This document shows, piece by piece, positions 7,733 through 40,765 of a DNA stretch of 64,000 nt. The notes under the pieces are model-generated. The model was not told where the DNA came from. It saw only the letters and a list, made by a program, of their open reading frames with translations, and did no database searches. The stretch's first letter is position 1; every line of letters begins with the position of its first letter. Location: positions 433,195 to 497,194 of IMG/VR virus record IMGVR_UViG_3300017971_000185, one strand, 5' to 3'. The translations under genes and the position numbers were made by a program.

Positions 7733-9412
7733 ATGACTGCTCTAGCTCTTCAAAGCTGGATCGTTGCTCCCGAGGTAGAGCGGGTGGCGCGGGAGTTTTC
7801 CCCCGAGGAGTGGGAGACGTACAAGAAGGATCACCCTGGCGCAAAGCGGGAGCGTCATACGATCCGTGAGCGCAAGAGGGAGCGTGGGAAGGAAGAGGAG
7901 AAGGCTGAGAAGCCGAAGGGGAAAGCGAACGAGACCAAGGAGGCGCTCAAGGCCGCGAAGCCGAAGATCGAGAGCAAATTCAAGGAGGCGATCGGCGAGC
8001 AGTCGCAGAAGATCGCGGATGGTGTCGATAAGCTCCTGAGTATCTCTGAGGGCTCGACAAGCAAGTTTCTCAAGCATCTACCTACAGCGGGTATCGCTGT
8101 TGGCGCTGCGGTAGGCGCTGCTCTGGGGCCTGAGTGGCTTGATGCTCTGGGTTCTGGCGATCTCGCAACGATGTTGCCAGGGATCAAGGGCACACTGCTC
8201 GCAGGAGCGGCAGGAGCGGCGATGGGAGCTATTCCCGGTAGTGCAACGGTGTTGGCAGGTCTCGGGGCGTTGGGAGTGCTCGCCAAGAAACTTGCCAAGT
8301 GGGCTGGCGGTAAGGAAGGCAAGACAGCCGCCGATTTGGCCGACATGCCTGATGATCTCAAGCAAGCATTGCTCGACTACTTTACGAACGTGACGGATGA
8401 CGAGATGGCGCTAGTCGGGAAGGCGAAGTCCAAAGAGAACGCAGCCAGCCTTGCCGCTGCGGTTCTCAAACAAGAGGAAGAGAAAACAGAAGGTGGGGAG
8501 AAGCAGGCTGCTTTGATGAATAGGTGGTCCTCAATGGAGAACACTAAGCAAGCATGCGTCAACCTCAGAGCGCTGATGGCGTTGTTGCAGGCAATGTATC
8601 AGCACTACTACACAGCACACTGGACAACGCGTGGGGAGCCTTTCTACGGTAAGCATCTCATGTTCCAGCGCATTTATGAGGCAATCGATGAGGAAGTCGA
8701 TTCTCTTGCTGAGAAGTTGGTTGCCTTCTTCGGTGCGGAAGCTGTTGAGCCTGTGGCGCTGGCTTCTTTGATGCAGGGATGGTTGCAGCGTTGGTCTTCG
8801 ATTGAGGATTTACGTCGTAGGTCTCTTCAAGCTGAGAAGGATTTTCAAGAGAGTCTGCGTCTGATCTACGATCAGTTAGAGAAGGAAGGCTCTTTGACGT
8901 TGGGGCTTGATGATTTTTTGGCCGCCATTGCCAATACCCATGAGACTCACACGTATTTGGTGCAGCAGTCACTTGGTGGTGTGTCGCGGGTAGCTACGTT
9001 GGTTGAGGCATGGGGACGAGGATATGGACCAGGACGTGGATATGAGTGTGGATATGGGCCGGGGCCGGGCCGGGGGCCAGGACCGGGCTGGGGTGGATAT
9101 GGGCCGGGGCCGGGATACGGGCCAGGATGGGCAGGATTGCCTGGCGAGATGACGCCTCTCGAAAAGTCCTGGGGTGGCTATTCGTCCTTCCGGCCGATTC
9201 GCCGTGGCGAGGAGGATGAGGACGAGGAAGTCGATGCCGATGACCTGGATCTCGATGCTTCATGGGAAAGTCTCGCGGACGATGAGGGCTATTTCCATTC
9301 GGTTCCGCAGTGGAGCGAGCTACGTGAGCTAGCAGAATCCGGCGAACGAGAGAAGATGCCGAAGACGGACCAAGAGCCCTTTGAAGGGTGGACTCTATCC
9401 GCGACCGGATAG
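7733..9412 (+). CDS. Multidomain protein: PEEW-HP module, Gly/Ala hydrophobic helices, Dps/ferritin-like domain, GYGPG repeats
   Basis: AHWTTRGEPFYGKHLMFQRIYEAIDEEVDSLAE matches the Dps HW..H..F..Y..D..AE signature. Confidence 0.7.
   Translation: MTALALQSWIVAPEVERVAREFSPEEWETYKKDHPGAKRERHTIRERKRERGKEEEKAEKPKGKANETKEALKAAKPKIESKFKEAIGEQSQKIADGVDKLLSISEGSTSKFLKHLPTAGIAVGAAVGAALGPEWLDALGSGDLATMLPGIKGTLLAGAAGAAMGAIPGSATVLAGLGALGVLAKKLAKWAGGKEGKTAADLADMPDDLKQALLDYFTNVTDDEMALVGKAKSKENAASLAAAVLKQEEEKTEGGEKQAALMNRWSSMENTKQACVNLRALMALLQAMYQHYYTAHWTTRGEPFYGKHLMFQRIYEAIDEEVDSLAEKLVAFFGAEAVEPVALASLMQGWLQRWSSIEDLRRRSLQAEKDFQESLRLIYDQLEKEGSLTLGLDDFLAAIANTHETHTYLVQQSLGGVSRVATLVEAWGRGYGPGRGYECGYGPGPGRGPGPGWGGYGPGPGYGPGWAGLPGEMTPLEKSWGGYSSFRPIRRGEEDEDEEVDADDLDLDASWESLADDEGYFHSVPQWSELRELAESGEREKMPKTDQEPFEGWTLSATG
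9013..9135 (+). repeat. Low-complexity G(Y/P/R)GPG coding repeat
   Basis: GRGYGPGRGYECGYGPGPGRGPGPGWGGYGPGPGYGPGW; repeated GGGCCGGGGCC. Confidence 0.85.
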
Positions 9413-10766: not shown

Positions 10767-11453
10767 ATGCCGACGAAAGAACAGCTAGATCTCCTTGCTG
10801 ACAGTCCTCCAAATGCCACACGGGTCAAGGTCGTCACGGCCGAAGGGAAAGAGAAGTGGCGAATCCTTCCTGGTTTGGTTGGCCCCGAGGAGCAAGTCCT
10901 TCTCGATACCGACACGATTGCGCTGAGCAGCAAGAAGCGCAGGCCCATCTTCATGACGGGGAAGCCGGGGCGGAAGGTCCGTCCCAAGCGGGATCCCAAA
11001 GATGAGCTAGTCAAGGTCATCGTCAAGGACAAAGAAGAACACATGAAGAAGGATCCTCTTCTGGCTGCGGTTCGCGAGAACCCGGAGTCGGTGGAGGTTC
11101 TGCACGAAACGATCAAGGCCATAGCCAACGAGGTTTCCTCCCTGGAATTCGAGCGCATTGAGGCAGACCGCAAAGGCGAGGGCTCAGCCATGCTCTCGAA
11201 TCGTCGCATCGCGGCGTTGACCAAGATCGGTGACACATGGCTCAAGCGGATGGACCAGATCATGTCCAAGGGCATCGATCTGGAGAGCCCGGCTTTCAAG
11301 GGTGTCTACAACCTGATCATGGAGACGTTTCGCGAGGCCATGTCCTCTGCAAATATCCGTGAGGAGGCCATCAAGCTGACGTTCACCAAATTCAGTCACC
11401 GTGTCGAGGCTGATGATTGGTGGAACGAGGCTCGGATGAGGATGAAGCAGTGA
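10767..11453 (+). CDS. Helical protein, candidate terminase small subunit
   Basis: Directly upstream of and overlapping terL; assignment is positional only. Confidence 0.35.
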   Translation: MPTKEQLDLLADSPPNATRVKVVTAEGKEKWRILPGLVGPEEQVLLDTDTIALSSKKRRPIFMTGKPGRKVRPKRDPKDELVKVIVKDKEEHMKKDPLLAAVRENPESVEVLHETIKAIANEVSSLEFERIEADRKGEGSAMLSNRRIAALTKIGDTWLKRMDQIMSKGIDLESPAFKGVYNLIMETFREAMSSANIREEAIKLTFTKFSHRVEADDWWNEARMRMKQ

Positions 11454-13588
11454 CCCGGTCGAGCCTAGCGGAGATAGCCCGAACGGTCGGCTCCTTCTGG
11501 GACAACAACGCGGCTTCCGGGCAGACAGAGGTGGTGGATGTCATCACCTTCATCGAGGAGTGGGCAGGCCGCAGGCTTTTCCCAGCACAAAGAGTCATCC
11601 TCAAGGCCCACTACGGGCTGGCTCTCGATGACAGCCCGGCTGGCTTTTCAGAGGAGCTACTGGCGTCTTACTCGACCGTGGATCTCCTGGCTCTGGCGCT
11701 GGAGGAAGATCCCAAGGTCAGTGGTCAGGCAGATCGAGCGCAACTCATTCGGACCATCATGCGCAAGACCGTCGTCATCTATGATGACGATGCTCCTTGG
11801 CGCAAGACGCCAGCCTCAGCGAAGTGGCTGACTGAGCGCGAGTACCTGCACTATCTGTACGACAACCAGCGTGCGAACATTCGCGAGGTCATTCCCGGCG
11901 AAGAACGCCGGGAGATGATCCTGAGTGTCGGACGACGGTCAGGAAAGACTGAGTTGTCGGCCATCATTGCGGCTTACGAGACGTACAAGCTGCTGGCCAA
12001 GGGGGATCCGCAGCTTTTCTACGGGCTCCCAAACGGCGAGACGATTCAGCTTATCTCTGTTGCTACTGATCGTGATCAGGCGAGCATTCTCTACGGCAAG
12101 GTCAAGGCGATCTTCAACGACACGGACTACTTCGCGGCTCACCGGGCCAACTCGACCCAGACCTTTGCGAAGTTTCAGACGGCGAGGGACATCCAAGACT
12201 TCGGTCGGTTTGATGGCAATGCTCAGCAGGCGAGCATCAACGTCACTTTCCGTTCGTGCATCGCGAAGGGGCTGCGTGGTCCCGGTAACATCGTCGCCAT
12301 CCTAGACGAGATCGCTCACTTCACAGATGCAGGGCAGTCGTCGGCAGAGGAGGTCTACAAGGCGATCTCTCCGTCGCTCTCGACGTTTACTCCGAAGGAT
12401 CCCGACAACCGAACCAAGGCGCTCACGGAAACATCCGATGGGCGCATGATTCTGATCTCATCTCCGCTTGGTCGGCAGGGCAAGTTTTTCGAGTTGTTCC
12501 AGATGGCGATGAAGGGCGGCTCTGGGTCGGCCAACATGCTGGCGATTCAGGCACCGACGTGGGAGATCAACCCGACCATTCCGCCGGGAGAGTACGAGAA
12601 AGAGTACGCCAAAGATCCTATCCAATTCATCACGGAGTTTGGCGGCGAATTCTCCAGCCGGACGCTGGGTTGGATCGAGGTCCGCAAGGATCTGCTCGAA
12701 TGCGTGGACCCGACGCTTCGCCAGCGAACACGCGGGCTCCCTCGTGTTCCTCATTTCATGGGGATCGACTTCGCGTTGGCTCAAGACGGCACGGCCGTAG
12801 CCATCGGTCACATCGAAGGCCCCAAGGTCATCCTCGACTACATCGATGAGATCCGTGCCGGGACGCCAGGGCCCTACGAGAACCATGAGCGGCTCGACTA
12901 CGAGGAAGTGGCTGACTGGATTCGGGACTTGTCGAAGAAGTTTCTGATCGAGGAGGGGATGTTCGATCAGTGGGCCGGGATCATCTTTGAGCAAGCTCTT
13001 GCGAAGCGCGGACTTGCCCAGATCAAGACGCAACACCTGACGGGTCCTCTGTCGAGCCAGATCTTCAAAAACTTCAAGGATCTGATGTACGAGAGGCTTC
13101 CCGGCGGAGAGTCGCGGCTCGTTCTCTACGATGACATGCCCGATAAGGACAAGACGGGGATGAGCGAGGACGCGTACCGGGAGGCACTGGCGGCGCAGGA
13201 CGAGATGGGGGAGGGCGACGATCCGAAGGAGGAAGAAGGGCCTATCTCGTATCTCCAAGAGTTGCTGGAGCTACAGGCCACGATCAAGTCCAAGTACATC
13301 GTGGAGGTCAAGGCTCCCAATCTCGTTGGTAAGCATGACGACCGCTCGGATGCTCTGGTGCGCATGGTGTGGCTGGCTTCGCAGAGACTTGGAAACATCA
13401 AGTATATCTCAGGGCAGATAGCTCAGGGCGTTGGCCCCAATCGACACCGAATCTCAGAAGGTGCGGTTGTCAAGGCGCGAATGAGGGCGATGCAGAGTGG
13501 TAGCCATGAGCATCGGACTGTTCGCCAGCGCCAGGGTCACTATGTGCGTCCAGTGCTCGGGGTTCGCGGAGGAAGGCTAAAGGGGTGA
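11450..13588 (+). CDS. terL: Terminase large subunit
   Basis: Walker A VGRRSGKT, Walker B ILDEIAH, coupling motif LISSP, nuclease GIDFA..D and HDDRSDA; GTGA overlap favours start 11450 over 11417. Confidence 0.9.
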   Translation: MTRSSLAEIARTVGSFWDNNAASGQTEVVDVITFIEEWAGRRLFPAQRVILKAHYGLALDDSPAGFSEELLASYSTVDLLALALEEDPKVSGQADRAQLIRTIMRKTVVIYDDDAPWRKTPASAKWLTEREYLHYLYDNQRANIREVIPGEERREMILSVGRRSGKTELSAIIAAYETYKLLAKGDPQLFYGLPNGETIQLISVATDRDQASILYGKVKAIFNDTDYFAAHRANSTQTFAKFQTARDIQDFGRFDGNAQQASINVTFRSCIAKGLRGPGNIVAILDEIAHFTDAGQSSAEEVYKAISPSLSTFTPKDPDNRTKALTETSDGRMILISSPLGRQGKFFELFQMAMKGGSGSANMLAIQAPTWEINPTIPPGEYEKEYAKDPIQFITEFGGEFSSRTLGWIEVRKDLLECVDPTLRQRTRGLPRVPHFMGIDFALAQDGTAVAIGHIEGPKVILDYIDEIRAGTPGPYENHERLDYEEVADWIRDLSKKFLIEEGMFDQWAGIIFEQALAKRGLAQIKTQHLTGPLSSQIFKNFKDLMYERLPGGESRLVLYDDMPDKDKTGMSEDAYREALAAQDEMGEGDDPKEEEGPISYLQELLELQATIKSKYIVEVKAPNLVGKHDDRSDALVRMVWLASQRLGNIKYISGQIAQGVGPNRHRISEGAVVKARMRAMQSGSHEHRTVRQRQGHYVRPVLGVRGGRLKG

Positions 13589-17200: not shown

Positions 17201-17748
17201 AGTACGAGCTAATCAACCGGGAGCTTTACGCGGGGCTCGGGGTCACGGAGTCGTTGCTGTCTGGCGAGTCGAGCTACAGTGGCGACCGCATCAATCTGGA
17301 GGTCATCAACGTCCGCTACATGCTCATGCGTGAGATCGTTCAAGATCTCATCGAGGAGTATTGCTTCAAGCCCATGTGCGCGAGGATGGGCTTCATCGAG
17401 ACCGTCAATGGCAGGGATCAGGTCGTCTATCCGAAGCTGAGCTTTACTCGGCTTGCGCTTCGGGACAATCAGGACACCTACGACGCACTCTACAACCTCT
17501 ACTCGAAAGGCTCGATCCCGGTTTCGACCATTCTGGACCTTCTCAACATCGATCCAGAGTCGGCGGCGGAGGAGTTGGAGCGCGACTTCGCGACCTTCCA
17601 AGACGCGACGTTCAACGAGGTTCTCCGCGGTGCCTACTCCAGCGTGGGAACCAAGCTGGCTGACGATACCGACTTCACGGAGATGATCGCCAAGCGGCTT
17701 GGGCTCAAGTACGAGCCGAAGGAGGAAGGCGGCGGAGGACGGTTCTAG
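14281..17748 (+). CDS. Portal protein interrupted by an intein
   Basis: Position after terL; FFYRADPFVGQAIDLH, RGHSRL, LYAGLGV, FKPMCARMGF..YPKLSF are portal-like segments. Confidence 0.8.
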   Translation: MASPRKRVRARTCLRVTPKRRVIAGSADVPTNGDAQLVGRVPTRTDRREELSVGKPQPLIRGSMRSKIATCGGSAFSGYGGAGGVGGIGVSGGGSGVGSAGSSTLGSGGNFYSPELSTDFLELPQSLDEQRNYFRFFYRADPFVGQAIDLHTELPLSKIRLGRPEAKSKELGDQSLDFIKRWCKNIGLLHRLIEIVHEYNLLGEVFIFFEDRNPEMPEDIRVERKYVLPDEEGAELIEQAEERDNADERAADWMQANYEGWTAIRVLPPEQIHLEGFPFTDEKLIELIPDSKTKAIIEMAGNGDERAKEIVESMPADVVSAVTDGKNIPLNTNPKAGSFCYYMANKRSQYEPRGHSRLERCIRTLVYKDKCLLPGCLVWVRRKGIPQQVRVETIQDGEFLLTHKGRFRKAITGSREIEEDIVALAVEGIRRPLCVTRDHRVLVVEDGVERWIEAGELRPGQQLCEPSIDNGDRRRTFDLRKWWGNRHFAVQRRSLCGGETCIVDRHLSVCEVSEEDNTLYVTFSFPQDHVNRVGAVQGMRKLLEWLRDLERPTQVSYKALSEVTGISPVRLRNYAFTLRKRLGLRMDTTPVGAGPRKTTWHPAPPDAEVPDETQYHTLASGLCEVPLTEDVCYLLGAFLGDGAIWHSDCRFLNTCYVEWSFGGDAISLKVRDRIARIAGDLISDENLHFTPVMGEYDTESAIHYVRVEDELFARWVAEEMGVDCYTKRLPFWVFELADEQIKALLCGLLDTDGSLKVGLPSNDKTVEISVELANATLIDQLHLLCNRVGLVSYVGQCTRSATSITRRWKTKSGMREKTYTYPEATYYSLRSTDYSSVREWSRGSVKGEETEWVERKYTWRSRFDHNRLTRRITGVERIPYTGTVYSFDVEEDESHTGGGLLLHNCRQAQTSIASRHMTPIRLVYAENMNQAQTEALRDQIDLALQDPDYSIVTNFQVTWEEMTPQGRLLELSGEYELINRELYAGLGVTESLLSGESSYSGDRINLEVINVRYMLMREIVQDLIEEYCFKPMCARMGFIETVNGRDQVVYPKLSFTRLALRDNQDTYDALYNLYSKGSIPVSTILDLLNIDPESAAEELERDFATFQDATFNEVLRGAYSSVGTKLADDTDFTEMIAKRLGLKYEPKEEGGGGRF
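15391..16992 (+). mobile_element. LAGLIDADG intein (534 aa) in portal
   Basis: K|CLLPG N-terminus; TVYSFDVEEDESH..LLHN|C C-terminus; LLGAFLGDG and LLCGLLDTDG; AT-richer codons than the exteins. Confidence 0.92.
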
Positions 17749-17753
17749 GCTGA

Positions 17754-17786
17754 TAGATAGCCTATCTAAGCCCTCTATCGAGGGCT
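17754..17786 (+). promoter_or_regulatory. Palindrome plus RBS-occluding hairpin
   Basis: TAGATAG-C-CTATCTA followed by AGCCCTC-TATC-GAGGGCT, which abuts ATG 17787. Confidence 0.45.
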
Positions 17787-20700
17787 ATGTTCTCAGCCGC
17801 CAAAATCGCCAAACGTTACCTGCAACGGCAGGCGAATGGCAAGAAAACTGGCTACCGGGACAGCGTGGGATTGTTCATTCCGCTGCCCGCCGCTCTCGCC
17901 AGGCAGTTTCCGTCACTCGGCACTGAGGACCGTTCGCCACCGCACACCACTTTCCTGTTCGTAGGTGACGTTTCGGAGGACCGGGAAGCTGACTTTCTGA
18001 GGGTTTTGAGCGATGCGTTCCAGGGCGAGGGCTGGCCCAGGGTCAAGGCCACGCTGGGCGATCTCAACTACTTCCAGCACACCGACAAGGGGCGGATCGT
18101 TCCTCACGTGGCCGTGAAATTCGGTCAGCCGATGGCTGAGTTACGGGACCGGGTGAAGAATCGCTTGGAGGAAGCGGGTTTCGAGGTCAAGGACTCGTTT
18201 CCCGTCTACATGCCGCACGTCACGTTGGATTACACGCCTGGGTTTGACAAGCCGTACAAGGGGGACGTGCCGACCGGTACGTGGGAGTTTGATGAAATGG
18301 AAGTGTGGGGCTTGCCCAAGGTCCACAAAGTCAAGTTTGGGTCCGCACTCCAGAGCAAGCTGGGTGCTCAGAAAAGGAGTCCTCGGGACATCCCCACGAA
18401 GGCGCAGCTTGACTTTGATGGCACGTTCTCCCACTGGCAGAAGTCAGCGTTTGTCGCGGAGTCGGGTTGGGATGCAGCGGACAACCATCGATTTGTGCTC
18501 TGGCCGGACAACAGAGATGAGGAGACGTTTCTCAACGGGCCAGTGCGGTCGCTATTCGAGGACAGCGGGTACTTCACCGGGCGTGTCTGGAGCGACACAC
18601 AGAAGGAACAAGGTCGTCCGCTCGGAGTCGAGGTCCATGGGGAAATTGCCAAACGTGTTGCCAGGCAGTACTTGGCTCGCGTTCAGCCACTTGACCTACG
18701 GCAGATCGAGAAGTTTCGCAAGGACTTCTTGATGCTGATGAAGAACGCCAAGGTCGTGAAGGACTATAAACAGGCGTTGAAGTGGAAAGAGGCGGTCCAG
18801 ACTTGGAGTGATCGGTTTGAGCTTTTCGTTCTTGATCGTCTTCGCAAGGCAATCAAAGACCTGAGATTTCAGAGGCGAATTACCCAAGGTGATGCAGACT
18901 ATTGGGACAAGAAGATCGGGCACGAGGTCTGGGATTTGCATCTCGACTTTCGTGTTCCTCTAGAGCGCTACGAATTTGTGGTCAAGTATGATCCGAGGGC
19001 GTCTAGAGAGGGGCTGTTTGCGCAGCTACAGCGCGAGCTTCCAAAGTGGGAAGGGCGTGTGCGTCGCTCAGCGCGCAAAGCATGGCGTGTGCTCAAGGAC
19101 TTTGCGGAGTGGTACTCGCGAATCTCTGAAACACCGCTGGGCGTGGATATCCCTGAAGAGGAGCGGGTAAGCATTGAGGGTCTTCCGGTAACAATCAGAG
19201 GTTTTCCGACCGACTCCTCTGAGATGTACGCCGACTTTTTGGAACGATTTAAGGTAGGTCTGAAACGCTACAAACAGCGTGCCAGACAAGCGCTTCCGCT
19301 TCTGCTCCGCGGTCAGCTTCCGTTGGTTGTCGATTTCCGTGCGAGGCTCGATGAAGCGGGGGTCTACGAGCACGACCACATCTCCATCAATCCTACTTCG
19401 GCGGAGCGAAATCCAGGCGCGCTGGCTAAGACCATTGCGCATGAGATGGGGCACCACGTCTACAAGACGTACTTGAGCAAAACCGCTCAAGACTTCTGGT
19501 CTCGGGCGATTTCAGGAAACTACGGAACGCTTGATCTCAACGAAGTTGCTCGTAGGTACGGAGGCGACAAGTTTCTCTACGATAACGAACGGATCAAGAA
19601 AGAGAACCCGTTACTTTATCTTCAGATCCAAGGGCTGTGGCACATGCCGGAGACCAAGCGCGTATTCGATTACGTCTTGGGCATGGATGACTTGAAGAAG
19701 TACCTCGCAGAAGGCGGCACGGCCAAGTTTCGGGTCCACGGCAAGCCGATCACGGGATACGCCCACAAGAATAAGGAGGAAGCGTTTTGCGAGGCTCTGG
19801 GCATGCTCGTCGGTTACGGACCACGCACCGTACTGCCGGAGGTTCGGTTGTGGCTCAAGACGATTCTGCCCCAGATCAAGATCGCACGCCATTCCGTGAG
19901 CCAGTGCATGCACAAGGGCTGCAAGAAGGCTCCAGAGATCGAGTGTATCTGGGCTGAGGGCATCGGCCATGCGTGGTTTTGCAAGCCGCACTTCAAGGAG
20001 TGGTCCACCAAAGGGGACGGGAAGGGAGAGGTCTGTAGGCAATGGGAGATCGACGGAAAGGCGGGAGAGAAGAAGTGCGCTGGTGATGGAGAGTGTTTCT
20101 ATCCAGGCCAGCGCGTGAAGATCGGCCCTTATACAGACGGATCTTGGAAGGATGGCGTTGTCTTGAAGTTGGAGCGATACGACATCCTCAATCCAGATGT
20201 TCTGGTGCGAGATGACGAAGGCATTGAGGACTGGGAGGACCAGGACAGCTTGGTTCCCTTGGAAGGACCAGACGCTAGGGCAGATCCCTCTTTGAAGACA
20301 GCCAAGCCAAGCGATAGCTGGCTGGCGCTGAATCCCGACGTGCTCTACCGGGCCGAAGAGGAGGATGAGGAAGTGACGGCGGAGGATCTCGTAGCCGAAG
20401 CCGCGCGGTTGTTGGGAGTTGCCAAAGCCGGACCCGTTGTGGATAGCACGGAGTGGAACGAGGACGTGGCGTCGTTCCTGAAGATCGCTCCGCCCGTAAT
20501 GCGCGTGGCTTTCCAGTACAGGCTCAAGACGGCTGGATGGTGGGCGATTCAGCCGGGCAAGCCGGGCATCAACCCTCCGCCAGTCGACAAGGGTGGCTTG
20601 ATGAACGCCATCCCAGGCACGGACCCGAACGAAGGGGCGCTCTATGGCGGGGATCGTCCCGCGGACATCCTGGGTGACGCCATGCGGGATGTGGACCGAG

Positions 20701-22319
20701 AGTATCTGCTTGCCTGGGGCCGACCGGCGACCCGGACAGAGCTAGAAGAGGCATGGAATTTCGTGATGGGTCCGATTCTGGAGGACGGGAGCTTCAACTA
20801 CGGAAGCAAGTCGGAGCCGTTGAACCAGTGGCTCATCGAATTTGCCGAGTGGTTGGGGAAGAAACCCAACGAGATCATGTTCTGGAGCGACGATCTGTGG
20901 CATGCGTTGGCGCGGCTGTGGAAAGAAGGGAAAGGTCCCGCGCACCTGGAGGCATACCGCAAGGAGTTGCTGGGGGTCTGTGAGGACTCCAAGGGGTTCG
21001 GCGAGCACGCCACGCTTCGTTCAGAAGACCTGGCAGAGAGGCTCCAAGCTCGGGTCTCGGTCATCCATGATGAGACTTTCCGTGGTGAAGATACTTTGGA
21101 AGGAGACCAGGAGCCGGAGATCTTCATTGGTCGGGTGGCTTCCCAGCACTTGGCTCTGAGTGCGCACCGACGCTCGATCGCGTTGATGAAGTTTCTGTCC
21201 GAGACTGCGAGGAGCCTCGGCGTAGCGAAGCATGTCTACGTGGTGGGTGGCGCGGTACGAAACTTCGTCATCGAGCGGCCGATCAAGGATCTGGATCTCG
21301 TGATCGACTCCATGTCGGCCGGGCGCGACTCCGAGTGGTTTGCCAAGGAGTTAGCGCGTCGGATCCCAGCAGCCACAAACCTCAAGACGAATCAGTACGG
21401 GGTCGCCATCCTCACTGTGAGCGGAGATTGGGAGCTAGATGGCGACAACATGAAGGGTGAGGTCATAGAGATCGCCAACGCCCGTAGCGAGTCCTACGCC
21501 AAGGGTGAGGGGAAAGGCTACAAGCCTTCGGAGGTACAACCGGCGACCATCGAGCAGGATATACGAAGGCGCGACTTTACAATGAATACATTGATGTGGC
21601 GCCTGCTGGACTTGGCGAAGGGGCCAGACAAGGCCGAGATCATCGATCTTACGGGGTGTGGTCTGAAAGACCTGAAAGAGCGTTCGGTCAAATGCCCGGC
21701 CGACCCCAACAAGACGTTCTCAGATGACCCCACGCGCATGTTGAGGGTCATTAAGTTTACGGGGAAGTACGGCTTCAAGATCCCGCCAGACGTAGCGGCT
21801 TCCATCAAGCGCAACGCACGGAAGATGAAGCAGATGCCCTGGGAGGCCATCGGCAACATCTTGGTCGGAGACATTCTCAAGGAGCCTACCGCCCGCAAGT
21901 CACTACGTCAGATGAAGGAGCTTGGGCTGCTCGACGTGGTGAGCGAGATGATTCAGGAGAAGCGACCGTTCGCCACGTTCATGGCGAACCAACTCAAGCG
22001 CGACCGACGGGTGCAGCTTCTCCTCGATCTCATGGATCTCGGTCTCCCAGCGAACACACCGCTCCACTTCCTCACGCCCAAACAACGGCAGTGGCTTCGC
22101 GAGACCACGGTGAGGATGCCAGAGGATGAGGCGAGCAAGTTTGCAGACAGGCTGATCAAGCCTCCGGTGGACAACAAGAGAGTCATTGACGAGTTGATGC
22201 TGCCGCCGCCAGAGCGAAGCCGCATCAAACCGTTAGCTCGCGAGCTAATTCTGGCTGACCCGAAGCTGGCTGACGATCCCCGAAAGCTCACGGATCTGGT
22301 GGTCAAGAAGTGGAAGTGA
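17787..22319 (+). CDS. Polyvalent protein: 2H phosphoesterase + zincin metallopeptidase + Cys/His finger + class II tRNA nucleotidyltransferase
   Basis: PPHTTF and PHVTL (2H); AHEMGHH..YAHKNKEEAFCE (zincin); VGGAVRN..KDLDLV, RRDFTMN, DDPTRMLR (CCA/PAP family). Confidence 0.85.
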   Translation: MFSAAKIAKRYLQRQANGKKTGYRDSVGLFIPLPAALARQFPSLGTEDRSPPHTTFLFVGDVSEDREADFLRVLSDAFQGEGWPRVKATLGDLNYFQHTDKGRIVPHVAVKFGQPMAELRDRVKNRLEEAGFEVKDSFPVYMPHVTLDYTPGFDKPYKGDVPTGTWEFDEMEVWGLPKVHKVKFGSALQSKLGAQKRSPRDIPTKAQLDFDGTFSHWQKSAFVAESGWDAADNHRFVLWPDNRDEETFLNGPVRSLFEDSGYFTGRVWSDTQKEQGRPLGVEVHGEIAKRVARQYLARVQPLDLRQIEKFRKDFLMLMKNAKVVKDYKQALKWKEAVQTWSDRFELFVLDRLRKAIKDLRFQRRITQGDADYWDKKIGHEVWDLHLDFRVPLERYEFVVKYDPRASREGLFAQLQRELPKWEGRVRRSARKAWRVLKDFAEWYSRISETPLGVDIPEEERVSIEGLPVTIRGFPTDSSEMYADFLERFKVGLKRYKQRARQALPLLLRGQLPLVVDFRARLDEAGVYEHDHISINPTSAERNPGALAKTIAHEMGHHVYKTYLSKTAQDFWSRAISGNYGTLDLNEVARRYGGDKFLYDNERIKKENPLLYLQIQGLWHMPETKRVFDYVLGMDDLKKYLAEGGTAKFRVHGKPITGYAHKNKEEAFCEALGMLVGYGPRTVLPEVRLWLKTILPQIKIARHSVSQCMHKGCKKAPEIECIWAEGIGHAWFCKPHFKEWSTKGDGKGEVCRQWEIDGKAGEKKCAGDGECFYPGQRVKIGPYTDGSWKDGVVLKLERYDILNPDVLVRDDEGIEDWEDQDSLVPLEGPDARADPSLKTAKPSDSWLALNPDVLYRAEEEDEEVTAEDLVAEAARLLGVAKAGPVVDSTEWNEDVASFLKIAPPVMRVAFQYRLKTAGWWAIQPGKPGINPPPVDKGGLMNAIPGTDPNEGALYGGDRPADILGDAMRDVDREYLLAWGRPATRTELEEAWNFVMGPILEDGSFNYGSKSEPLNQWLIEFAEWLGKKPNEIMFWSDDLWHALARLWKEGKGPAHLEAYRKELLGVCEDSKGFGEHATLRSEDLAERLQARVSVIHDETFRGEDTLEGDQEPEIFIGRVASQHLALSAHRRSIALMKFLSETARSLGVAKHVYVVGGAVRNFVIERPIKDLDLVIDSMSAGRDSEWFAKELARRIPAATNLKTNQYGVAILTVSGDWELDGDNMKGEVIEIANARSESYAKGEGKGYKPSEVQPATIEQDIRRRDFTMNTLMWRLLDLAKGPDKAEIIDLTGCGLKDLKERSVKCPADPNKTFSDDPTRMLRVIKFTGKYGFKIPPDVAASIKRNARKMKQMPWEAIGNILVGDILKEPTARKSLRQMKELGLLDVVSEMIQEKRPFATFMANQLKRDRRVQLLLDLMDLGLPANTPLHFLTPKQRQWLRETTVRMPEDEASKFADRLIKPPVDNKRVIDELMLPPPERSRIKPLARELILADPKLADDPRKLTDLVVKKWK

Positions 22320-25300
22320 CGACTCCCATGCGTGTCGCCGGCATCTTGGCCTACCCGCCAAAGATGCGACAGGAGATCCTCGATTGGGTGAAGTCGCTAT
22401 ATGCCACATGGGCTGCAACGAGAGCCCGTGTGGAAATCAAGGGGCACAAGGAGGATATCAAGGAATTCAAGGCTGATCTCAAGGAGGCAACGACTCCAAG
22501 AGAGATTGAGCGGCTCAAGGATCGTATCGAGGTACGACAAGAAGGCATCGACAAAGCGAGCAAGATTCTGAAGGAAGCCATCCGCGATGGTGCGAAGGGC
22601 CGTGGTCGGAAAAAGTCCAAGCGTGACTTCGTGACGGACCTGGGGGGGATGCCGAAAAACTACCCGATCGAGCAGTTGCAGCAGGAGATACCCAAGATTC
22701 GCGTCGGGGTGGAGTTTACAGGCCAGCCCGCTCCGCGAGAACGCGCTGTCCACGGCACGTGGAACGGCAACACCAAGAAGTTGAGGATTCTGCTGCACGG
22801 TAGAGCGCCTGACCAGATCTTCAAGTACCGCGAAGCTGCTCGGACCATGGACACGATCATCAAGCATGAGCTTCGGCACATGGTCCAGCAGATGTTCTTC
22901 CAGTTTGAAGCGGAGTTGATGGAGAGGAAGATTCTGGAGCGCGGCAAGAGCTGGGAGAAGCTGAGCCCGAAAGAGCAAGAACACATCCGCAAGTCGCTGA
23001 GCCGAGGTGCGCCAAAGGAGTACGAAGTTGGCAGCTTTGCGCTCTATGAGGACGTTCCCAAGAATCTACAGTACTACCTACTGCCGCAGGAGTTTTTCAC
23101 GTGGCTCGGTCAGAGCGAGGAGACGTTCTTGGATGAGGTTCGCACCATGCGGGTGGTTGGTGGTGAGAAGGACCCCCGACCCAAGAAGAAGGAGTTTGAC
23201 CAGTTTGTAGGCAACCCGCGGCCGATCAAGTCGAAAGGCCGGGTTCTCAAGAAGGGCGACCCCATTGCCACGCATCCGTTCTTCGCGACTCTGTGGGAAT
23301 ACGACCGCAAGCGGTGGCAACGGGCAGTGCGTGAGTTGTGGAAGCGTGTGCAGAACAAGCTCGTCTTGCCGCCAACGAGATTGCCGTCTTCCAAGAGGGT
23401 AGCAGCGCGACACAAGACCGCCCGCATGGCAGAGCGGGTAGCGATTCGGCATCTGGTTGCCCGCGCTCCCATGAGCAAGCTGCTCGGGGACCTGATGGGC
23501 AAATGGGAGCTTCTCAACCGTAGCGTCGATGAGGATCTGCAAAAGGGCGGGGTATCGCGGGCCGATTTCCTGGCCAACAGGTTCAAAGGTCTGGACGAGT
23601 ACGACATTCGGTCGTTGCTCATGCGTCTCAAGTCTAGCGGCCGGGTCATTTGGCCGCACATGCTTCGGGCTGCCAAGCTCTGGGTCGAGTACCTGCTTCA
23701 AACCAAATCGATTCCGCGAGGCCAGGCGAAGAAGTTTGAGTTGTCGGCACGGCCCTTCTCTGCGGCCAAGCGGCCTCCACGAGACATCGTCGCGTGGCTT
23801 GAGAAGAACAAGGGCAAGTATCGCTACTTGGTAGACGCAGCCGGGTGGCCGGACAAGGTTGAGAATGGCATCGGGGGAGCAGAGGACTTGTTTACGGTCG
23901 GGCCGTTCAAGGTCCACAACACCGTGCGGGAGACGGGCGGTCAGCCGCGAACGTTGGCCTGGTACAACCCGAATGACGACAAGCTCTACCTACGACCGCA
24001 TATCAAGGTGGGAGAGGGCGAGCTTCACAATTTCCTGCATGAGTTGGGGCATCGCTATTGGGACAAGATCATGTCTCGCGATGTCAAGACGAAATGGGCG
24101 AATCACCACTCGATGATCAAGTACGGGCTTGGGCAGTACGAGCGGTCTAGACCCACAGATCTACCTGAGATTGGTGAGCCTCTTCCGATCCCCATGCAGG
24201 GCATGAGGCGCGGGGGTCCTCCGATAGTCACCGATATCGATGATCGCTTCATCCACGTCTTGCACAAGCCAACTGGACGTGACGCCAAGATCAAGAAGCG
24301 GGAGTACTGGAAGTTTTTGGAGCGCCGAGCCAAACGGGGGCAGTTTCCGACCCCTTACGCCAGTACGAATAGGGAGGAGCACTTCTGTGAGGCGCTTGCC
24401 ATGCACCTCCTCGGCAATCTGCCGGAGCCCCACAAGTCGATCTTCGACACGGTCGTGATCAAGGGTGAAGACCCTCCTGGGATGCCGGCAAAGGTCGCCC
24501 GGATGTACCTCGCCAAGCGGTTCACGCCGGAGGCGTGGAAAGAGTACAAGCGCAAGCACCCCAAAGCCGATCCGAAGCGACACGAGATTGTCCAGCCCGA
24601 GAAGGGGAAGGCTCCAAAGCCCAAGAAAACGGTCCGGCAGAAGCTCGACCACGTGTTCACGAGCATCAAGGGGCTCAGCAAGTCGGTCGCCAAATCGGTT
24701 CGCGAAGCTCCCGAGAAGGTCCAGAAATTCATCGTGGACAAGAGTTATCGCGATGACGTGACCAAAGCAGCCGCCAAGACGATCAAGGAAGCCCCTGGAA
24801 AGATCAAGACCGCGGTCATCCAGTCCGGCAAAGCCGAGTTGAAGGCAATCTTCAAGGAGACTCCGCGCATCCTCGCCACGCTGGCGAAAGAACGACGCGC
24901 TCCCACGAAGGCAGAGGCAAAGACTCTTTATGGAGTCGGTGTGTATGTGGCAGGGACGGTTCTAGCCATGACCACCGGAGGGCCGGCAGGCGGAGCGATT
25001 GGGCGAGTGGCCTTGGCCGGCGCTAAAGCGTTCGGGCATAGCCTGAGCCTGCACATCGGCATCAAGGCCATGAACCAGTTTGCTGATGAGGGATTCCTGG
25101 CCTACGAAGCAGCCGAAAGTGTTGCTCAGGCAGGAGGCATTTCGGCGGTGCTTCCAGTCAGCACGAGTGCTCTTCCTGGTCTGGGTCAGATTTGGGATGC
25201 CGTGAGTAAGGTGGTGATGGCTTCGGAAGAGAAGTCCAAGTCCGAATCCGCGATGGATAAGATGATTGAGCAGTTGATCAGGATCATCGGGGAGGAGTTG

Positions 25301-36851: not shown

Positions 36852-37724
36852 ATGACGGTTGACAACGCAGTCAAACAGCGCATCATCAGCGACTACATCA
36901 AGACCGCTGCTGGGCGTCACAAGCTGGCCGCGTCCATGACGCAGCCTCTCCGCACGCGGCGTGACTACACGTCTGTGGGTCGGCGCACGTTCCTCGTGGA
37001 GCAACTCCCCGATGGCGCACTGCCGATCTACGACAAGGATCCCGATGTCACGGCGTATGTCGTCGGCGAGGAAGGCGAGAACATTCTCGCTGTCACCAAG
37101 CCGCGGCGCGTGGTGTTCCCACTCTTCGAGATCGCGAGCTTGCCCGAGATCCCGCTGACCCAGATCAAGGAGCGGCGCTTCGACCTGATCGAGCGTGCGC
37201 AAGATCTGGCGAGGGCTCAGATCCAAGCCGCGGAGGACGAGAGGGTGTTCGCCATCCTCGACGCTATCGCCACTGTTGGATTCGACTCGCTTCCGGGCCA
37301 GTTGAACCCCGACGTGCCGGTGGTCGCTCCCATTTCTGGTGCCGTCCTGGCCGACGCATTCAGTCTCATCGAGCGTCACGACCTTCGGGTTGCTCGTGTG
37401 TACATGAATGCGCGCGACTATGCCGACATCAGGAAGTTTGGTCGGGACATCTTGGATATCGAGAGTCAGCGCGACTTGCTGAAGACCGGTCTCCAGGCAA
37501 CCCTGTGGGGCGCGCAGATCATCACCAGCCGGCTCGTTCCGGTTGGCACGGTCTATGTGTGCTGCGAGCCCGAGTTGTTCGGACGCATCCCGGTGCGTAC
37601 AGAACTCACGGTCCTCTCGGCCGACGACCCCCGCGCCCGCACCATCGGGTTCTCAGTTTTTGAGAATCTCGGAATCGGTGCCTACAACCCGCGTGGGCTC
37701 ACTCGACTGTCTGTCACCCGCTAG
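36852..37724 (+). CDS. Major capsid protein (HK97/encapsulin-like fold)
   Basis: GGAGG RBS; 290 aa; VEQLPDGALPIYDKD, FPLFEIAS.PEI, RAQIQAAED; strongly biased codons; followed by a terminator. Confidence 0.82.
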   Translation: MTVDNAVKQRIISDYIKTAAGRHKLAASMTQPLRTRRDYTSVGRRTFLVEQLPDGALPIYDKDPDVTAYVVGEEGENILAVTKPRRVVFPLFEIASLPEIPLTQIKERRFDLIERAQDLARAQIQAAEDERVFAILDAIATVGFDSLPGQLNPDVPVVAPISGAVLADAFSLIERHDLRVARVYMNARDYADIRKFGRDILDIESQRDLLKTGLQATLWGAQIITSRLVPVGTVYVCCEPELFGRIPVRTELTVLSADDPRARTIGFSVFENLGIGAYNPRGLTRLSVTR

Positions 37725-37746
37725 TAGCGGCTGAGAGGCAGAATGG

Positions 37747-37782
37747 AACCCCGGTGGCTTCGGCCTCCGGGGTTTTCTTTTT
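37747..37782 (+). terminator. Rho-independent terminator
   Basis: AACCCCGG-TGGC-TTCG-GCCT-CCGGGGTT followed by TTCTTTTT. Confidence 0.88.
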
Positions 37783-37826
37783 GCTTGTGGGGCGTATTTG
37801 GGGCGCGGTAGGATACCCAGGACCCT

Positions 37827-38810
37827 ATGCGTGCCATCCCGTGTCCTATTTCTCCACAGGAGCTTGAACAGCTTTATCGAGTAGAGAAACTCACTGACGA
37901 GCAGATTGTCGAACGCATCGGTGAGGAGGCGACGGTCAAGCGTGTTCGATCGTGGCGTAAGCGGTTTGGCATTCGCACGCTTCATCGATGGGAGCGTTAC
38001 GATGTGCCGCTGATTGAGGGGCGACTCAAGTCTTTGCTAGTTGGCTCAATGCTCGGTGATGGGAGGCTCGTTTACAGGACGCACGCAACCCACTACACGG
38101 AGAACCATGAGGAGGCTCAGAAGGCTTATCTTGAGTGGAAAGTCGCTCAATGGGGGTCGTCCTGGGTGCGTACGGAGCCCAAGCCCAGTGTCAAGAAGAA
38201 GGATGGGAAAACCTACCGTTCATGGCGATTCAACACGGTCGCCCATGCGATTCTGAATGATTGGCAAGCGCTTTTCTACGAACGGCGTGATCGCGGCTGG
38301 AAGCGTCTTGTCTCTGAGATCGTGGATCATGTAGACGAATTCGCGCTGGCCATCTGGTACCTCGATGATGGTTCTGCGGGATGGTGGCCTGACATCATAT
38401 TCGGTGCGGATGGGGAAAGCCGCAAGGTTGCGTGGGCCATCTTTGAAAAGTTCGGTCTCAAACCTCGGTGGCGGTTGGCGAAAGAGATGGCGGGTCGGGA
38501 GACAGGTACCTTTCACATGGAACGCGAAGACACTGCCGAGAAATTTCTCAACATTATCACACCACATGTCCCGGTCTGCATGGCGTGGAAACTCAGGGGT
38601 TTCGGTTACAACAGCGGTCGAAACAACATCATCAAGGGCAAGCTCGATTCCGAGGTCTTACGGGAGTTTGCGGCCGAGGGAATTCCAATTCGGCGCATAG
38701 CAAAGATTCTTGGGGTTGGTAGCTCCACGGTGGATCGCTATCTTCGGAAAAATGGGATCGAGCATCCCCGGACCAAGGGGAATCCAAACCATCGGAGAAC
38801 CCATGTCTAG
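37827..38810 (+). CDS. LAGLIDADG homing endonuclease with terminal HTH
   Basis: LVGSMLGDG and LAIWYLDDG; C-terminal IRRIAKILGVGSSTVDRYLRKNGI. Confidence 0.85.
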   Translation: MRAIPCPISPQELEQLYRVEKLTDEQIVERIGEEATVKRVRSWRKRFGIRTLHRWERYDVPLIEGRLKSLLVGSMLGDGRLVYRTHATHYTENHEEAQKAYLEWKVAQWGSSWVRTEPKPSVKKKDGKTYRSWRFNTVAHAILNDWQALFYERRDRGWKRLVSEIVDHVDEFALAIWYLDDGSAGWWPDIIFGADGESRKVAWAIFEKFGLKPRWRLAKEMAGRETGTFHMEREDTAEKFLNIITPHVPVCMAWKLRGFGYNSGRNNIIKGKLDSEVLREFAAEGIPIRRIAKILGVGSSTVDRYLRKNGIEHPRTKGNPNHRRTHV

Positions 38811-39597
38811 CTCGACTGACGCACTTCGAAAATATCGTGAGGGATTGCGTGGAACGGCTAAGTATCGTGAGATGCGGGAGTATGATTGGGATCGGGTCCG
38901 GGCCGATCCTGCCAAGCATGCCAAGCGAAGTAAGACCAAACGAATCAAGCATGCTCGACGGATGGAGGAAGACTCTGACTACAAGACCAAGGTGTTGGCG
39001 GGAAGTAAGAGAGCCAACGCTCGTTTGAGAGAGCTTCCTGAGCATGAACGCTCTGCCAAACTCCACAAGTGGCGTTTGAAGAGCAGCTATGGTCTTACGC
39101 CTGAAGACTACGAGGAGCTTTTGGCTTCTCAGGGGAATGCCTGCGCGATCTGCCAGACCAAAGAGCCTGGCGGTAAGCGTAAGGTCTTTTCTGTAGACCA
39201 TTGCCATGAGTCGGGAAAAATCCGGGGGCTTTTGTGTGCTGGCTGTAATCTGGGGTTGGGTAAATTCAAGGATGATCCTGAGCTGCTTTGTTCAGCCATC
39301 GCCTATCTGAAAGCAGCAGAAGGAAAGCCGTCTCCTGAGGATATGCTTCATACAGTCACCTGTTCTGATTGTGGGAAGCGGTGGAAGACCAGGAGAGTCA
39401 GAGGATTGGTTTGTCCAGAGTGCGAGGAAAAGCGGGCTCAGGAACGAGAGCGGCGTTGGAGGTTGCGTAGAACCAAACAGTGTCCCACATGCGGTGGTGG
39501 GTTTGTGGATGAAACGCAGGCCAACAACCGTAAGTACTGTTCTTCTCTGTGCTTGGCCAAGGCACAGGCTGTGCGTCGGAAGGAGCGGGATGCGTAG
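38803..39597 (+). CDS. Endonuclease VII-family His-Me nuclease with zinc ribbons
   Basis: YGLTPEDYEELLASQGNACAIC..VDHCHESGKIRGLLCAGCN. Confidence 0.88.
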   Translation: MSSSTDALRKYREGLRGTAKYREMREYDWDRVRADPAKHAKRSKTKRIKHARRMEEDSDYKTKVLAGSKRANARLRELPEHERSAKLHKWRLKSSYGLTPEDYEELLASQGNACAICQTKEPGGKRKVFSVDHCHESGKIRGLLCAGCNLGLGKFKDDPELLCSAIAYLKAAEGKPSPEDMLHTVTCSDCGKRWKTRRVRGLVCPECEEKRAQERERRWRLRRTKQCPTCGGGFVDETQANNRKYCSSLCLAKAQAVRRKERDA

Positions 39598-40765
39598 CAA
39601 GAGGCCACCGCGAGAAGTCTTGGAGAGCTTGGTCGCGGAGCTTTTGACGCAACAGCAGATTGCTGGTCGTTATGGTGTGGCTCAGGTAACGGTGAGTCGC
39701 TGGCTGCGGCATTATGGGATTGAGGCGTTGGGTAAGACGGGGAAGATTGATCGGGAGCTGCCGCCTCTGACCGCGATTCAGCAGGCGCTCGTCGTGGGAT
39801 CTTTGTTGGGGGACGGGACGATGAGTGCTCCCAGCTTTCGCACGGCACGGATTGCGGAGGGGCATGCGCTCAAGCAGCGGGAGTACACGGATTGGAAGGC
39901 CGGCATCATGGGATCTTACGTGTCCAATCAGTATGAGGCTACCAAACGGAAGGACGGCAAGACGTACAAGGCGTGGTGGTATTCGTCTCGGACGACGACT
40001 CGGCTGCGTCCTTTTTACGATATGTTTTACGGCAGCGGGCACAAGGTGTTTCCGAAGCAGTTACCTGAGTTGATGACGCCTTTTGTGCTTGCCGTGTGGT
40101 ACATGGATGACGGGAGCCGGTGGGGGAGGTACTACCCACGCATCTCCTACGGCCTGGATGCTCAGGGTCTAGACCGAGCTTTGGAGGCTTTGGCGATGTT
40201 GGGTTTGTCTCCAAAGGTATACACGAGCAAGAAGGGGCGCACGCTTCATTTTCCGGGGCAAGATGATCTTTTCTTTAGCTTGGTCCGAGAGCATGTGCAT
40301 TCGTGTATGGTTTACAAGCTGCCTCTTGAGCGTGTCCGAAAACGTTATGTGTTTGTTGCGGAGAGGCAGGATCGGAGGCCCGAGTTTATTTCTGCCCTGA
40401 CGCCGGAGCGTTTGCGGAAGATGTACGAAGGCGACCTGATGACGGATGGGGAGATTGCTGTTTGTGTTGCCAAGCGCTTTGGTGTTTCTCCGTTTCGTGC
40501 GGAGACTGTGCGGAGAGTCCGAAAGAAGTGGGGTATTCCGGCCATGACGAGTCAGGAACGGAAAGAGAGGAGGCGTGGGACTGCTCCGCGATTGACTGGC
40601 TTGACACGGAAGGTTTTGGAACGTTTGTACGTCGAGGATTTGCTAAGCGACACGGAAATTGGGAGAATCTACGGCGTGAGCAAGACGCCGATTCGGGCAC
40701 GACGCAGGGCATACGGGATTTTGGCCATTTCCAAGGCAGAACGAGCCAGGTTGAGGTTGGGTTGA
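39590..40765 (+). CDS. LAGLIDADG homing endonuclease with HTH modules
   Basis: VVGSLLGDG and LAVWYMDDG; TQQQIAGRYGVAQVTV; AGGAG RBS before ATG 39590. Confidence 0.85.
   Translation: MRSKRPPREVLESLVAELLTQQQIAGRYGVAQVTVSRWLRHYGIEALGKTGKIDRELPPLTAIQQALVVGSLLGDGTMSAPSFRTARIAEGHALKQREYTDWKAGIMGSYVSNQYEATKRKDGKTYKAWWYSSRTTTRLRPFYDMFYGSGHKVFPKQLPELMTPFVLAVWYMDDGSRWGRYYPRISYGLDAQGLDRALEALAMLGLSPKVYTSKKGRTLHFPGQDDLFFSLVREHVHSCMVYKLPLERVRKRYVFVAERQDRRPEFISALTPERLRKMYEGDLMTDGEIAVCVAKRFGVSPFRAETVRRVRKKWGIPAMTSQERKERRRGTAPRLTGLTRKVLERLYVEDLLSDTEIGRIYGVSKTPIRARRRAYGILAISKAERARLRLG

Follow-up and report, generated by a model that had tools for sequence, protein, structure and literature searches.

The sequence analysed here, referred to below as the window, is the terminal 64 kb (positions 433195-497194) of a 497,194-bp IMG/VR virus record (IMGVR_UViG_3300017971_000185) with a CheckV completeness estimate of 94%. 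Its source is an uncultured "huge phage" of ~500 kb that is present in sediment and seawater metagenomes. Our subject is P0001, a protein encoded directly downstream of the portal gene and composed of five modules plus linkers: a 2H phosphoesterase, a zincin peptidase, modules C and D, and a class II (CCA-type) tRNA nucleotidyltransferase (NTase). In polyvalent proteins, which phages or conjugative elements encode, a single polypeptide carries at least two unrelated effector domains; P0001, with three catalytic modules in one phage open reading frame (ORF), is by its architecture of this kind. We favor the view that P0001 is a polyvalent protein that serves as an RNA or tRNA 3′-end repair kit and is packaged in the virion. 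Taken whole, this reading has in our judgment an even chance of being right; for RNA 3′-end healing and nucleotide addition, considered apart from packaging, the chances are better than even.

The P0001 reading frame and its gene block

Module boundaries in P0001 were set by BLAST and hidden Markov model (HMM) comparison with 106 homologues (Table 1). The motifs that a preliminary description of this DNA had noted for the 2H, zincin and NTase domains are all in their places in the intact 1510-aa ORF and are conserved among relatives. That description also assigned the protein to the head region, and genes for the terminase large subunit (TerL) and the portal do precede it. The genes of this block are co-oriented and overlap or nearly touch. 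With its terminase, portal and capsid-like neighbors on the same strand, the P0001 gene is a member of a head-morphogenesis block.

Table 1. Modules of P0001 and genes of the surrounding block (coordinates are positions in the 64-kb window).
Feature	Residues	Window position	Strand	Remarks
P0001, whole ORF	1510 aa	17787-22319	+	ATG start, no internal stop
2H phosphoesterase module	10-190	17814-18356	+	LigT/ThpR type
Zincin module	293-702	18663-19892	+	Four-helix bundle and gluzincin core
Module C	700-775	19884-20111	+	Small Cys/His module, zinc-ribbon-like
Acidic linker	776-906	20112-20504	+	Predicted disordered; 24% D+E; pLDDT <50
Module D	907-1115	20505-21131	+	Helical, function unassigned
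Class II (CCA-type) tRNA nucleotidyltransferase module	1116-1509	21132-22313	+	
Terminase large subunit (TerL)		11417-13588	+	Upstream context of P0001
Portal gene	1155 aa	14281-17748	+	Directly upstream of P0001
Protein of unassigned function	1015 aa	22310-25357	+	Next gene; 10-nt overlap with P0001
Protein with N-terminal topoisomerase IB domain	1523 aa	25354-29925	+	PF01028, E=4.8e-24; overlaps the 1015-aa gene by a few bases
1371-aa protein	1371 aa	30469-34584	+	Two Hint/LAGLIDADG inteins; PHROG 'head maturation protease' match at aa 531-619
Capsid-like ORF, then mobile endonuclease genes	290 aa (capsid-like ORF)	36852-40765	+	Weak PF05065 match
LAGLIDADG_2 and HTH		37827-38810		Mobile endonuclease run
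Endonuclease VII		38710-39597		Mobile endonuclease run
Second LAGLIDADG_2		39371-40765		Mobile endonuclease run

The sequence is of metagenome origin, and a related phage apparently has the parts in two separate proteins of one contig, with 2H and zincin in P0011 and the NTase in P0022, as might be expected if P0001 were an artefact (a chimera, or separate genes joined by read-through) or a gene in decay and no longer active. Against this, three separate Logan assemblies (two from sediment, 2018, and one from seawater, 2021) span window positions 17500-22600 in single contigs with 0 differences. On two more IMG/VR contigs the NTase module is 100% identical and is surrounded by the same modules in the same order, and in P0001 the catalytic residues are intact and no stops occur. 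As the three assemblies are identical across this interval, the fusion is real and not an assembly chimera, and artefact or decay is extremely improbable.

Catalytic modules and connecting regions

The C-terminal module matches Pfam PF01743 (PolyA_pol) with E=2.5e-19 and 70.3 bits (cut-off 23), and the PHROG 'tRNA nucleotidyltransferase' with E=3e-30. P0001 holds the only PF01743 (class II NTase) domain in the genome. The motifs are GGAVRN (residues 1154-1159), DLD (1168-1170), E1228, RRD (1261-1263) and DDPTR (1313-1317). An alignment of 76 family members shows no variation in GGAVR, K-D-x-D, R-R and D1314-P-x-R1317, motifs A, B and D being kept in 76/76, and hardly any at E1228. The preliminary description had emphasized two peculiarities of this domain. 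One was the asparagine closing GGAVRN, where aspartate is usual; it is present, but asparagine at position 1159 is the rule in this family (65 N, 7 D and 4 S). The other was the lack of an HD domain after the NTase; none was detected in a Pfam scan of P0001, but this is uninformative, as most class II enzymes also lack one.

A structural model of residues 1110-1510 has a predicted local distance difference test (pLDDT) score >90 and aligns over 340-420 columns with CCA enzymes of 373-425 aa. Against full-length CCA enzymes its template modeling (TM) score by target is 0.5-0.58, and it also aligns with A-adding enzymes, CC-adding enzymes and E. coli poly(A) polymerase. The module spans head, neck and helical C-terminal region, so that the model predicts a full-length class II tRNA-enzyme architecture, without HD domain. 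The intact class II NTase of the preliminary description is borne out by the Pfam score, the conserved motifs and the full-length model alignment.

The reaction catalyzed by this module bears on a different explanation, in which P0001 is a set of counter-defence or takeover effectors: the NTase would poly(A)-tail host RNA for decay, the 2H domain would act as an RNase or degrade 2′-5′ or cyclic signals, and the zincin would cut a host protein. Curated profiles were tried as a discriminator between CCA-adding enzyme and poly(A) polymerase and were set aside: the NCBIfam CCA and PcnB models tie (~94 bits each; 94 vs 94 bits in P0001), far under cut-offs of 300-440, in 44/44 members, and the A-adding models score the same in these members, likewise far under cut-off. 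The tie is compatible with an effector and counts against tRNA repair. The opposite is indicated by the best PDB matches in sequence (the Aquifex A-adding enzyme and CCA-adding enzymes, E down to 1e-14) and in fold, which are tRNA A- or CCA-adding enzymes aligned over nearly the whole length, and by the flexible-loop stretch before motif B, as in A-adding and CCA-adding enzymes, which is present and conserved.

The 2H module, of which P0001 holds the sole copy in the genome, has its HxT motifs at H53-T-T55 and H144-V-T146; both histidines and both threonines are invariant in an alignment of 31 homologous modules. By itself P0001 scores E=0.006 and 17.2 bits against LigT_PEase, under the 23.3-bit Pfam cut-off, and PF13563 gave no match for it in the genome scan. 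Relatives exceed the PF13563 cut-off (e.g., P0003, 44.4 vs 27 bits), and a profile of the 31-member alignment matches the PDB entries 1vdx, 1iuh and 5h7e (PH0099, 2′-5′ ligase and ThpR structures) with E values from 1e-5 to 2e-4 (best E=1.3e-5). The assignment, weak from P0001 alone, is on these sequence comparisons firm in the family context, and the 2H domain proposed in the preliminary description stands. The function of such domains has been viewed differently: those of polyvalent proteins, never found with RNA ligases, were proposed to be RNases or signal degraders (PMC5512222), which would suit an effector.

The zincin motif HEMGH occupies residues 552-556 (nt 19440-19454). All 48 sequences compared keep H552, E553, H556 and E665, the last of which, within KNKEEAFCE (family pattern KNxEEAFCEA), is the candidate third zinc ligand; HExxH with a downstream Glu is the gluzincin arrangement. 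An AlphaFold (AF2) model of the module (pLDDT 93) consists of a four-helix bundle (aa ~299-449) followed by the zincin core (aa ~459-698), which superposes on the catalytic domain of anthrax lethal factor (LF; residues 561-774) with Z 10.6 and on PPEP-2/3 with Z ~9, at 15-16% sequence identity. The best PDB and AFDB matches in Foldseek are all MA-clan peptidases (M1, LTA4H, LF), and the best viral structure matches (BFVD, Foldseek) are putative peptidases of jumbo phages. Pfam could not be used to name the module: no family covers it, and scattered weak zincin matches occur in 2-3 of the 48 members. Membership of the M34 (LF/PPEP) sequence family was also rejected, P0001 having no significant Pfam peptidase match. 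From its modeled structure the module is an MA-clan gluzincin peptidase with the anthrax-LF/PPEP fold, for which catalysis is predicted. The likeness to LF and PPEP is limited to the fold and says nothing on substrate. The HEMGH zincin of the preliminary description is accordingly a real peptidase module, given the residues conserved in 48/48 sequences and the LF-fold match.

An exhaustive profile-free search places this module in 411 clusters at 50% identity, either stand-alone (~400-450 aa) or within larger proteins, in up to four copies. The stand-alone copies lie among small non-structural or early-type genes, beside PhoH, methyltransferase or RlaP NTase genes, a setting that would also fit an effector. 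Such peptidases have been proposed to split polyvalent proteins into working parts (Iyer et al. 2017, PMC5512222), and the long disordered linkers of P0001 would be natural cleavage targets. A PPEP-like self-cleavage site, 'INPPPV' near aa 930, was considered and rejected as structural, being conserved in the D modules of zincin-less relatives. Self-cutting of P0001 and action in trans on host or phage proteins are equally open roles for the zincin.

Module C contains C707, C712, C720, C731 and H734 in the pattern C-x4-C...C...C-x2-H, and its consensus reads CMxxGCxKxPExECIWAxGRGxAWFCxxH. In a model of aa 700-1510 it forms a small beta unit, at modest confidence, and aa 760-960 are disordered. 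The module is usually N-terminal in the head-slot proteins of relatives (P0005, P0006, P0008, P0009, P0021, P0038 and P0039) and may be an element for targeting or anchoring. Module D, modeled as helical at moderate pLDDT, precedes the NTase in several relatives; a search of the ESM Atlas with this module gave no usable match.

Relatives and the portal-adjacent slot

Domain architectures were counted in the 96 best proteins, of which 90 contain the NTase, 35 the 2H domain and 34 both. The 2H domain is N-terminal to the NTase in ~22 proteins, often abutting it (in P0028, 2H at 4-185 and NTase at 186-580), and C-terminal in 11, with HAD_SAK_1, DUF5661 or InPase between the two. That they are fused repeatedly, in both orders and often abutting, argues from sequence that 2H and NTase serve one pathway. 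Other partners are topoisomerase IB (TopoIB), PAP2, NUDIX, an RNA ligase domain, superoxide dismutase, papain-like peptidases and inteins; 2H, InPase and PRTase are all seen as partner domains among the relatives. P0028 (2268 aa) joins TopoIB with 2H and NTase in one chain. Tandem NTase copies occur in two metagenome relatives, three in P0013 (1326 aa) and two in P0043 (923 aa), and may represent a split between C-adding and A-adding or a gene-dosage device.

The phosphatase family HAD_SAK_1, which takes its name from RNA-repair proteins, would complete the chemistry in those relatives that carry it: cyclic phosphate opening, monoester removal and nucleotide addition. Pfam detects no HAD_SAK_1 phosphatase in P0001, and the relatives P0016, P0019 and P0038 have one. 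Both the position of this family between NTase and 2H and the tight 2H-NTase abutment, which points to one pathway, speak against a collection of independent effectors. With the evidence from the NTase and zincin modules included, we judge the effector explanation distinctly unlikely.

An alignment-based scan found the NTase on 307 IMG/VR contigs, and 80 loci were kept for locus counts. In 4/5 metagenome relatives TerL is followed by two small genes, the portal, the NTase protein and TopoIB (separate or fused), in this order. Across the IMG/VR loci the portal-to-capsid order (TerL-portal-NTase protein-TopoIB protein-...-capsid) is found in 45/80. In 40 of these head-slot loci the portal lies upstream, its end separated from the NTase start by a median of 1.1 kb, and TopoIB is nearby in 39/45. 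A 2H domain accompanies the NTase in 30/45 head-slot loci vs 1/35 others, and the median length of the NTase ORF is 1510 aa in the slot (maximum 3098) vs 477 aa elsewhere (378-948). The giant, fused, 2H-bearing form is thus associated with the portal-adjacent position. Diverged portals hidden at the 35 non-slot loci were considered and discounted: searches within 10 kb, using profile HMMs of 28 portals and 23 terminases, brought up no portal and a single distant terminase. In a maximum-likelihood phylogeny slot membership is clustered (7 changes vs 17 in shuffles); a single origin of the slot location was rejected, since well-supported branches force at least 4 changes.

Giant fused ORFs in the slot fit a position that feeds proteins into the capsid. 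From gene position and the size of slot ORFs, packaging of P0001 in the capsid and its delivery are plausible. A broader proposal can be made for the clade as a whole, namely that these huge phages keep a 'cargo slot' between portal and capsid, whose reshuffled giant polyproteins (containing 2H, tRNA NTase, HAD, pyrophosphatase, topoisomerase IB, zincin and other domains) are packaged, ejected with the DNA, and blunt tRNA-targeting abortive infection before phage gene expression. We put this forward tentatively, as a possibility that falls short of an even chance.

At 1155 aa the portal is much longer than those of relatives (558-575 aa), from which we infer that it probably carries an intein; there is a weak Intein_splicing match over aa 423-904. 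In relatives inteins sit in the terminase rather than the portal. Beyond the 1015-aa and TopoIB genes lie genes for a 177-aa protein and the 1371-aa protein, and then the capsid-like genes. The 1371-aa product is probably a prohead protease interrupted by two inteins, and the capsid gene region may be ridden with introns or homing endonucleases. The TopoIB domain of the 1523-aa head-slot protein is of the eukaryote/poxvirus type; a capsid-borne TopoIB, if this possibility held, would resemble poxvirus virions. Between window positions 11000 and 30900, a scan for promoter- and terminator-like sites gave no excess over shuffled sequence. Further out, a 559-aa protein with a ferritin-like domain is encoded at 7733-9412 (+), and a PAPS-reductase/DUF3440 protein followed by a ParB_N-like protein at 40808-43120 (+); the latter two may be a DNA-modification pair.

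Proposed RNA 3′-end repair and comparison with known systems

The genome has 46 tRNA genes, clustered at genome positions 310706-376140 (outside the window) and covering nearly all amino acids; CCA is encoded in 13/46 and missing from 33. One tRNA called by ARAGORN has an aberrant two-base anticodon. With 33 CCA-less genes, the maturation of phage tRNAs is a serious extra or alternative job for the NTase. P0001 could then be a non-packaged, cytoplasmic housekeeping enzyme that adds CCA to phage tRNAs, its head position and fusions being accidents of domain shuffling. This would agree with P0001 being the sole class II NTase of the genome, with the occurrence of ~400-aa stand-alone members of the NTase family outside head modules, and with the CCA-adding enzymes that huge phages carry in their translation toolkit (PMC7162821, PMC7824862). 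Yet giant fused forms occur nowhere but in the portal-adjacent slot, and late head-gene expression would be ill-suited to a tRNA enzyme needed at infection time unless it is carried in the particle. Also, tRNA 3′ processing generally leaves a 3′-OH, for which no 2H domain is needed, yet 2H-NTase fusions recur in both orders. We therefore consider pure housekeeping to be on the unlikely side, although it is the main competitor of the packaged repair kit.

For the repair kit, the other enzymes of the genome set the limits. Searches of the genome found neither a ligase of Rnl2, Rnl1 or RtcB type nor an RlaP NTase (the Rnl1 search had no positive control and is the weaker result). With no RNA ligase or RtcB, the phage could therefore heal and extend RNA 3′ ends, but not reseal internal breaks. 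A stand-alone 189-aa ORF (genome 212033-212341) scores 24.3 bits against HAD_SAK_1 (cut-off 25.6) and is a candidate to supply the phosphatase step absent from P0001. The preliminary description had proposed a virion-delivered tRNA 3′-end repair kit that would counter tRNA-cleaving defences from injection onward. The conserved catalytic residues, the 2H-NTase fusions (34/90) and the lack of a ligase agree with the repair itself, but the kit is incomplete, as P0001 has no phosphatase; the proposed delivery and the CCA specificity go further than these data.

We suggest that P0001 is made late, together with the head proteins, and that it probably enters the capsid and is released with the DNA into the next host cell. 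The zincin would then cut the chain into separate enzymes, or attack a host protein. The 2H module would open the 2′,3′-cyclic phosphate left on RNA by metal-independent RNases, after which a phosphatase would be needed for the monoester; relatives have the fused HAD_SAK_1 for this step, and here there is the weak stand-alone candidate. The NTase would rebuild the 3′-terminal nucleotides (CCA or part of it) lost from tRNAs, and the same enzyme would finish the 33 phage tRNAs without encoded CCA. Such a kit, lacking an RNA ligase, would mend 3′ ends but not anticodon-loop breaks.

A number of observations weigh against a packaged repair kit, in addition to the tie of the curated profiles. On the side of the chemistry, P0001 itself has no phosphatase for the monoester left by the 2H module, ThpR-type enzymes leave a 2′-phosphate, and extension of such an end by the NTase is an assumption. 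The stand-alone zincins lie amid non-structural genes, so self-processing is not the sole possible role of this module. On the side of packaging, Pfam and PHROGs reveal no MuF or other virion domain in P0001. Stand-alone NTase genes of ~400 aa from the same family occur away from any portal, slot and non-slot members interleave on the tree, and the fifth metagenome relative (NTase and InPase) sits elsewhere. No cultured relative with the same slot was found. The nearest GenBank relative, LR745208.1 (TerL 49% identical), yields no hit at E≤1e-5 to either the NTase or the 2H domain of P0001, and its zincin copy is ~50 kb from its terminase.

In LR745208.1 the interval from the terminase to a TopoIB-type gene is too short for a P0001-like protein. 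Tunturi_5 is the only cultured phage found with a related terminase (27% identity), and its gene order is different. The paper on the PaBG proteome has nothing on the PaBG peptidase or topoisomerase.

Among known systems, polyvalent proteins are the closest in design. Iyer, Burroughs, Anand, de Souza and Aravind (2017, PMC5512222) described a zincin-like metallopeptidase (MPTase) with HExxH and a downstream Glu, linked by HHpred to lethal factor, as the hub of phage polyvalent proteins. Zincin-hub proteins, including N4-type virion RNA polymerases, were predicted to be delivered (PMC5512222). P0001 shares with these proteins several unrelated catalytic domains, the zincin hub and the 2H partner, and its relatives have InPase and PRTase as well. 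It differs in its CCA-type class II NTase, which is absent from that text ('CCA', 0 occurrences), and in its partners: the 2H domain, never described there with RNA-repair partners, goes with a tRNA NTase in P0001 and with HAD_SAK_1 in relatives. P0001 also lacks a MuF or ArdC-N domain, and a fixed portal-adjacent slot is not described in PMC5512222. The N4-type virion RNA polymerase, a different cargo enzyme, acts early, is fused to a zincin, and is carried in the capsid and injected (PMC5512222); packaging is proven for N4 and proposed for P0001. If packaged, P0001 would represent a new class of ejected cargo beside that polymerase. Neither the combination of 2H, zincin and NTase nor its constant location within the head block has been described before, and we regard the conserved portal-adjacent cargo slot as the most interesting aspect. 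The zincin module matters even without packaging, as a 400-aa module outside all Pfam families (411 clusters). It shares with anthrax LF and PPEP the core fold and HExxH plus Glu, and adds an N-terminal four-helix bundle.

Systems that cut tRNAs or modify tRNA ends are a major branch of bacterial immunity. To our knowledge, the phage counters known so far are enzymes made after infection, such as T4 Pnkp and Rnl1, or spare tRNAs. In T4, Pnkp and Rnl1 repair tRNA cut by the PrrC anticodon nuclease, a system mentioned in PMC7824862, the ligase resealing the break; neither is known to be a virion protein. P0001 would resemble this pair as a phage answer to tRNA cleavage in which healing of the 2′,3′-cyclic phosphate comes first. 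The difference is that the T4 ligase reseals the anticodon loop, whereas the P0001 phage, without RNA ligase or RtcB, would be confined to terminal repair. A packaged repair set would act before host translation is shut off, which would be a new tactic.

The Swiss-army-knife (SAK) RNA-repair proteins also stack RNA end-healing domains, and relatives of P0001 join HAD_SAK_1, 2H and NTase. P0001 itself differs from SAK proteins in having no HAD_SAK_1, kinase or ligase, and does not fall into the HAD_SAK group. CCA-adding enzymes of jumbo and huge phages have been proposed to restore tRNA CCA, and 2H enzymes have been discussed as possible RNA-repair or signal-degrading factors (PMC7824862, PMC7162821). 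The stand-alone phage CCA enzymes belong to the same superfamily, and those annotated in Aeromonas phages and phage G are 28-33% identical to the NTase of P0001, which differs in forming the C-terminal part of a 1510-aa protein of the head slot. Packaged or not, it represents a large phage class II NTase family (the 307 IMG/VR contigs) that is not described in the literature searched.

The multifunctional CCA addition/repair protein of E. coli (NF008137) offers the nearest parallel for the chemistry, as it likewise combines a class II NTase with 3′-end cleaning in one chain. Yakunin and co-workers are said to have reported in 2004 that its HD domain supplies the 2′,3′-cyclic phosphodiesterase activity. 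P0001 scores 47.8 bits against NF008137 (cut-off 451), and its cleaning domain is 2H rather than HD and lies ~900 residues away instead of in the enzyme body. Even without packaging, the recurrent 2H-NTase fusion parallels the logic by which HD and NTase are joined in the E. coli enzyme.

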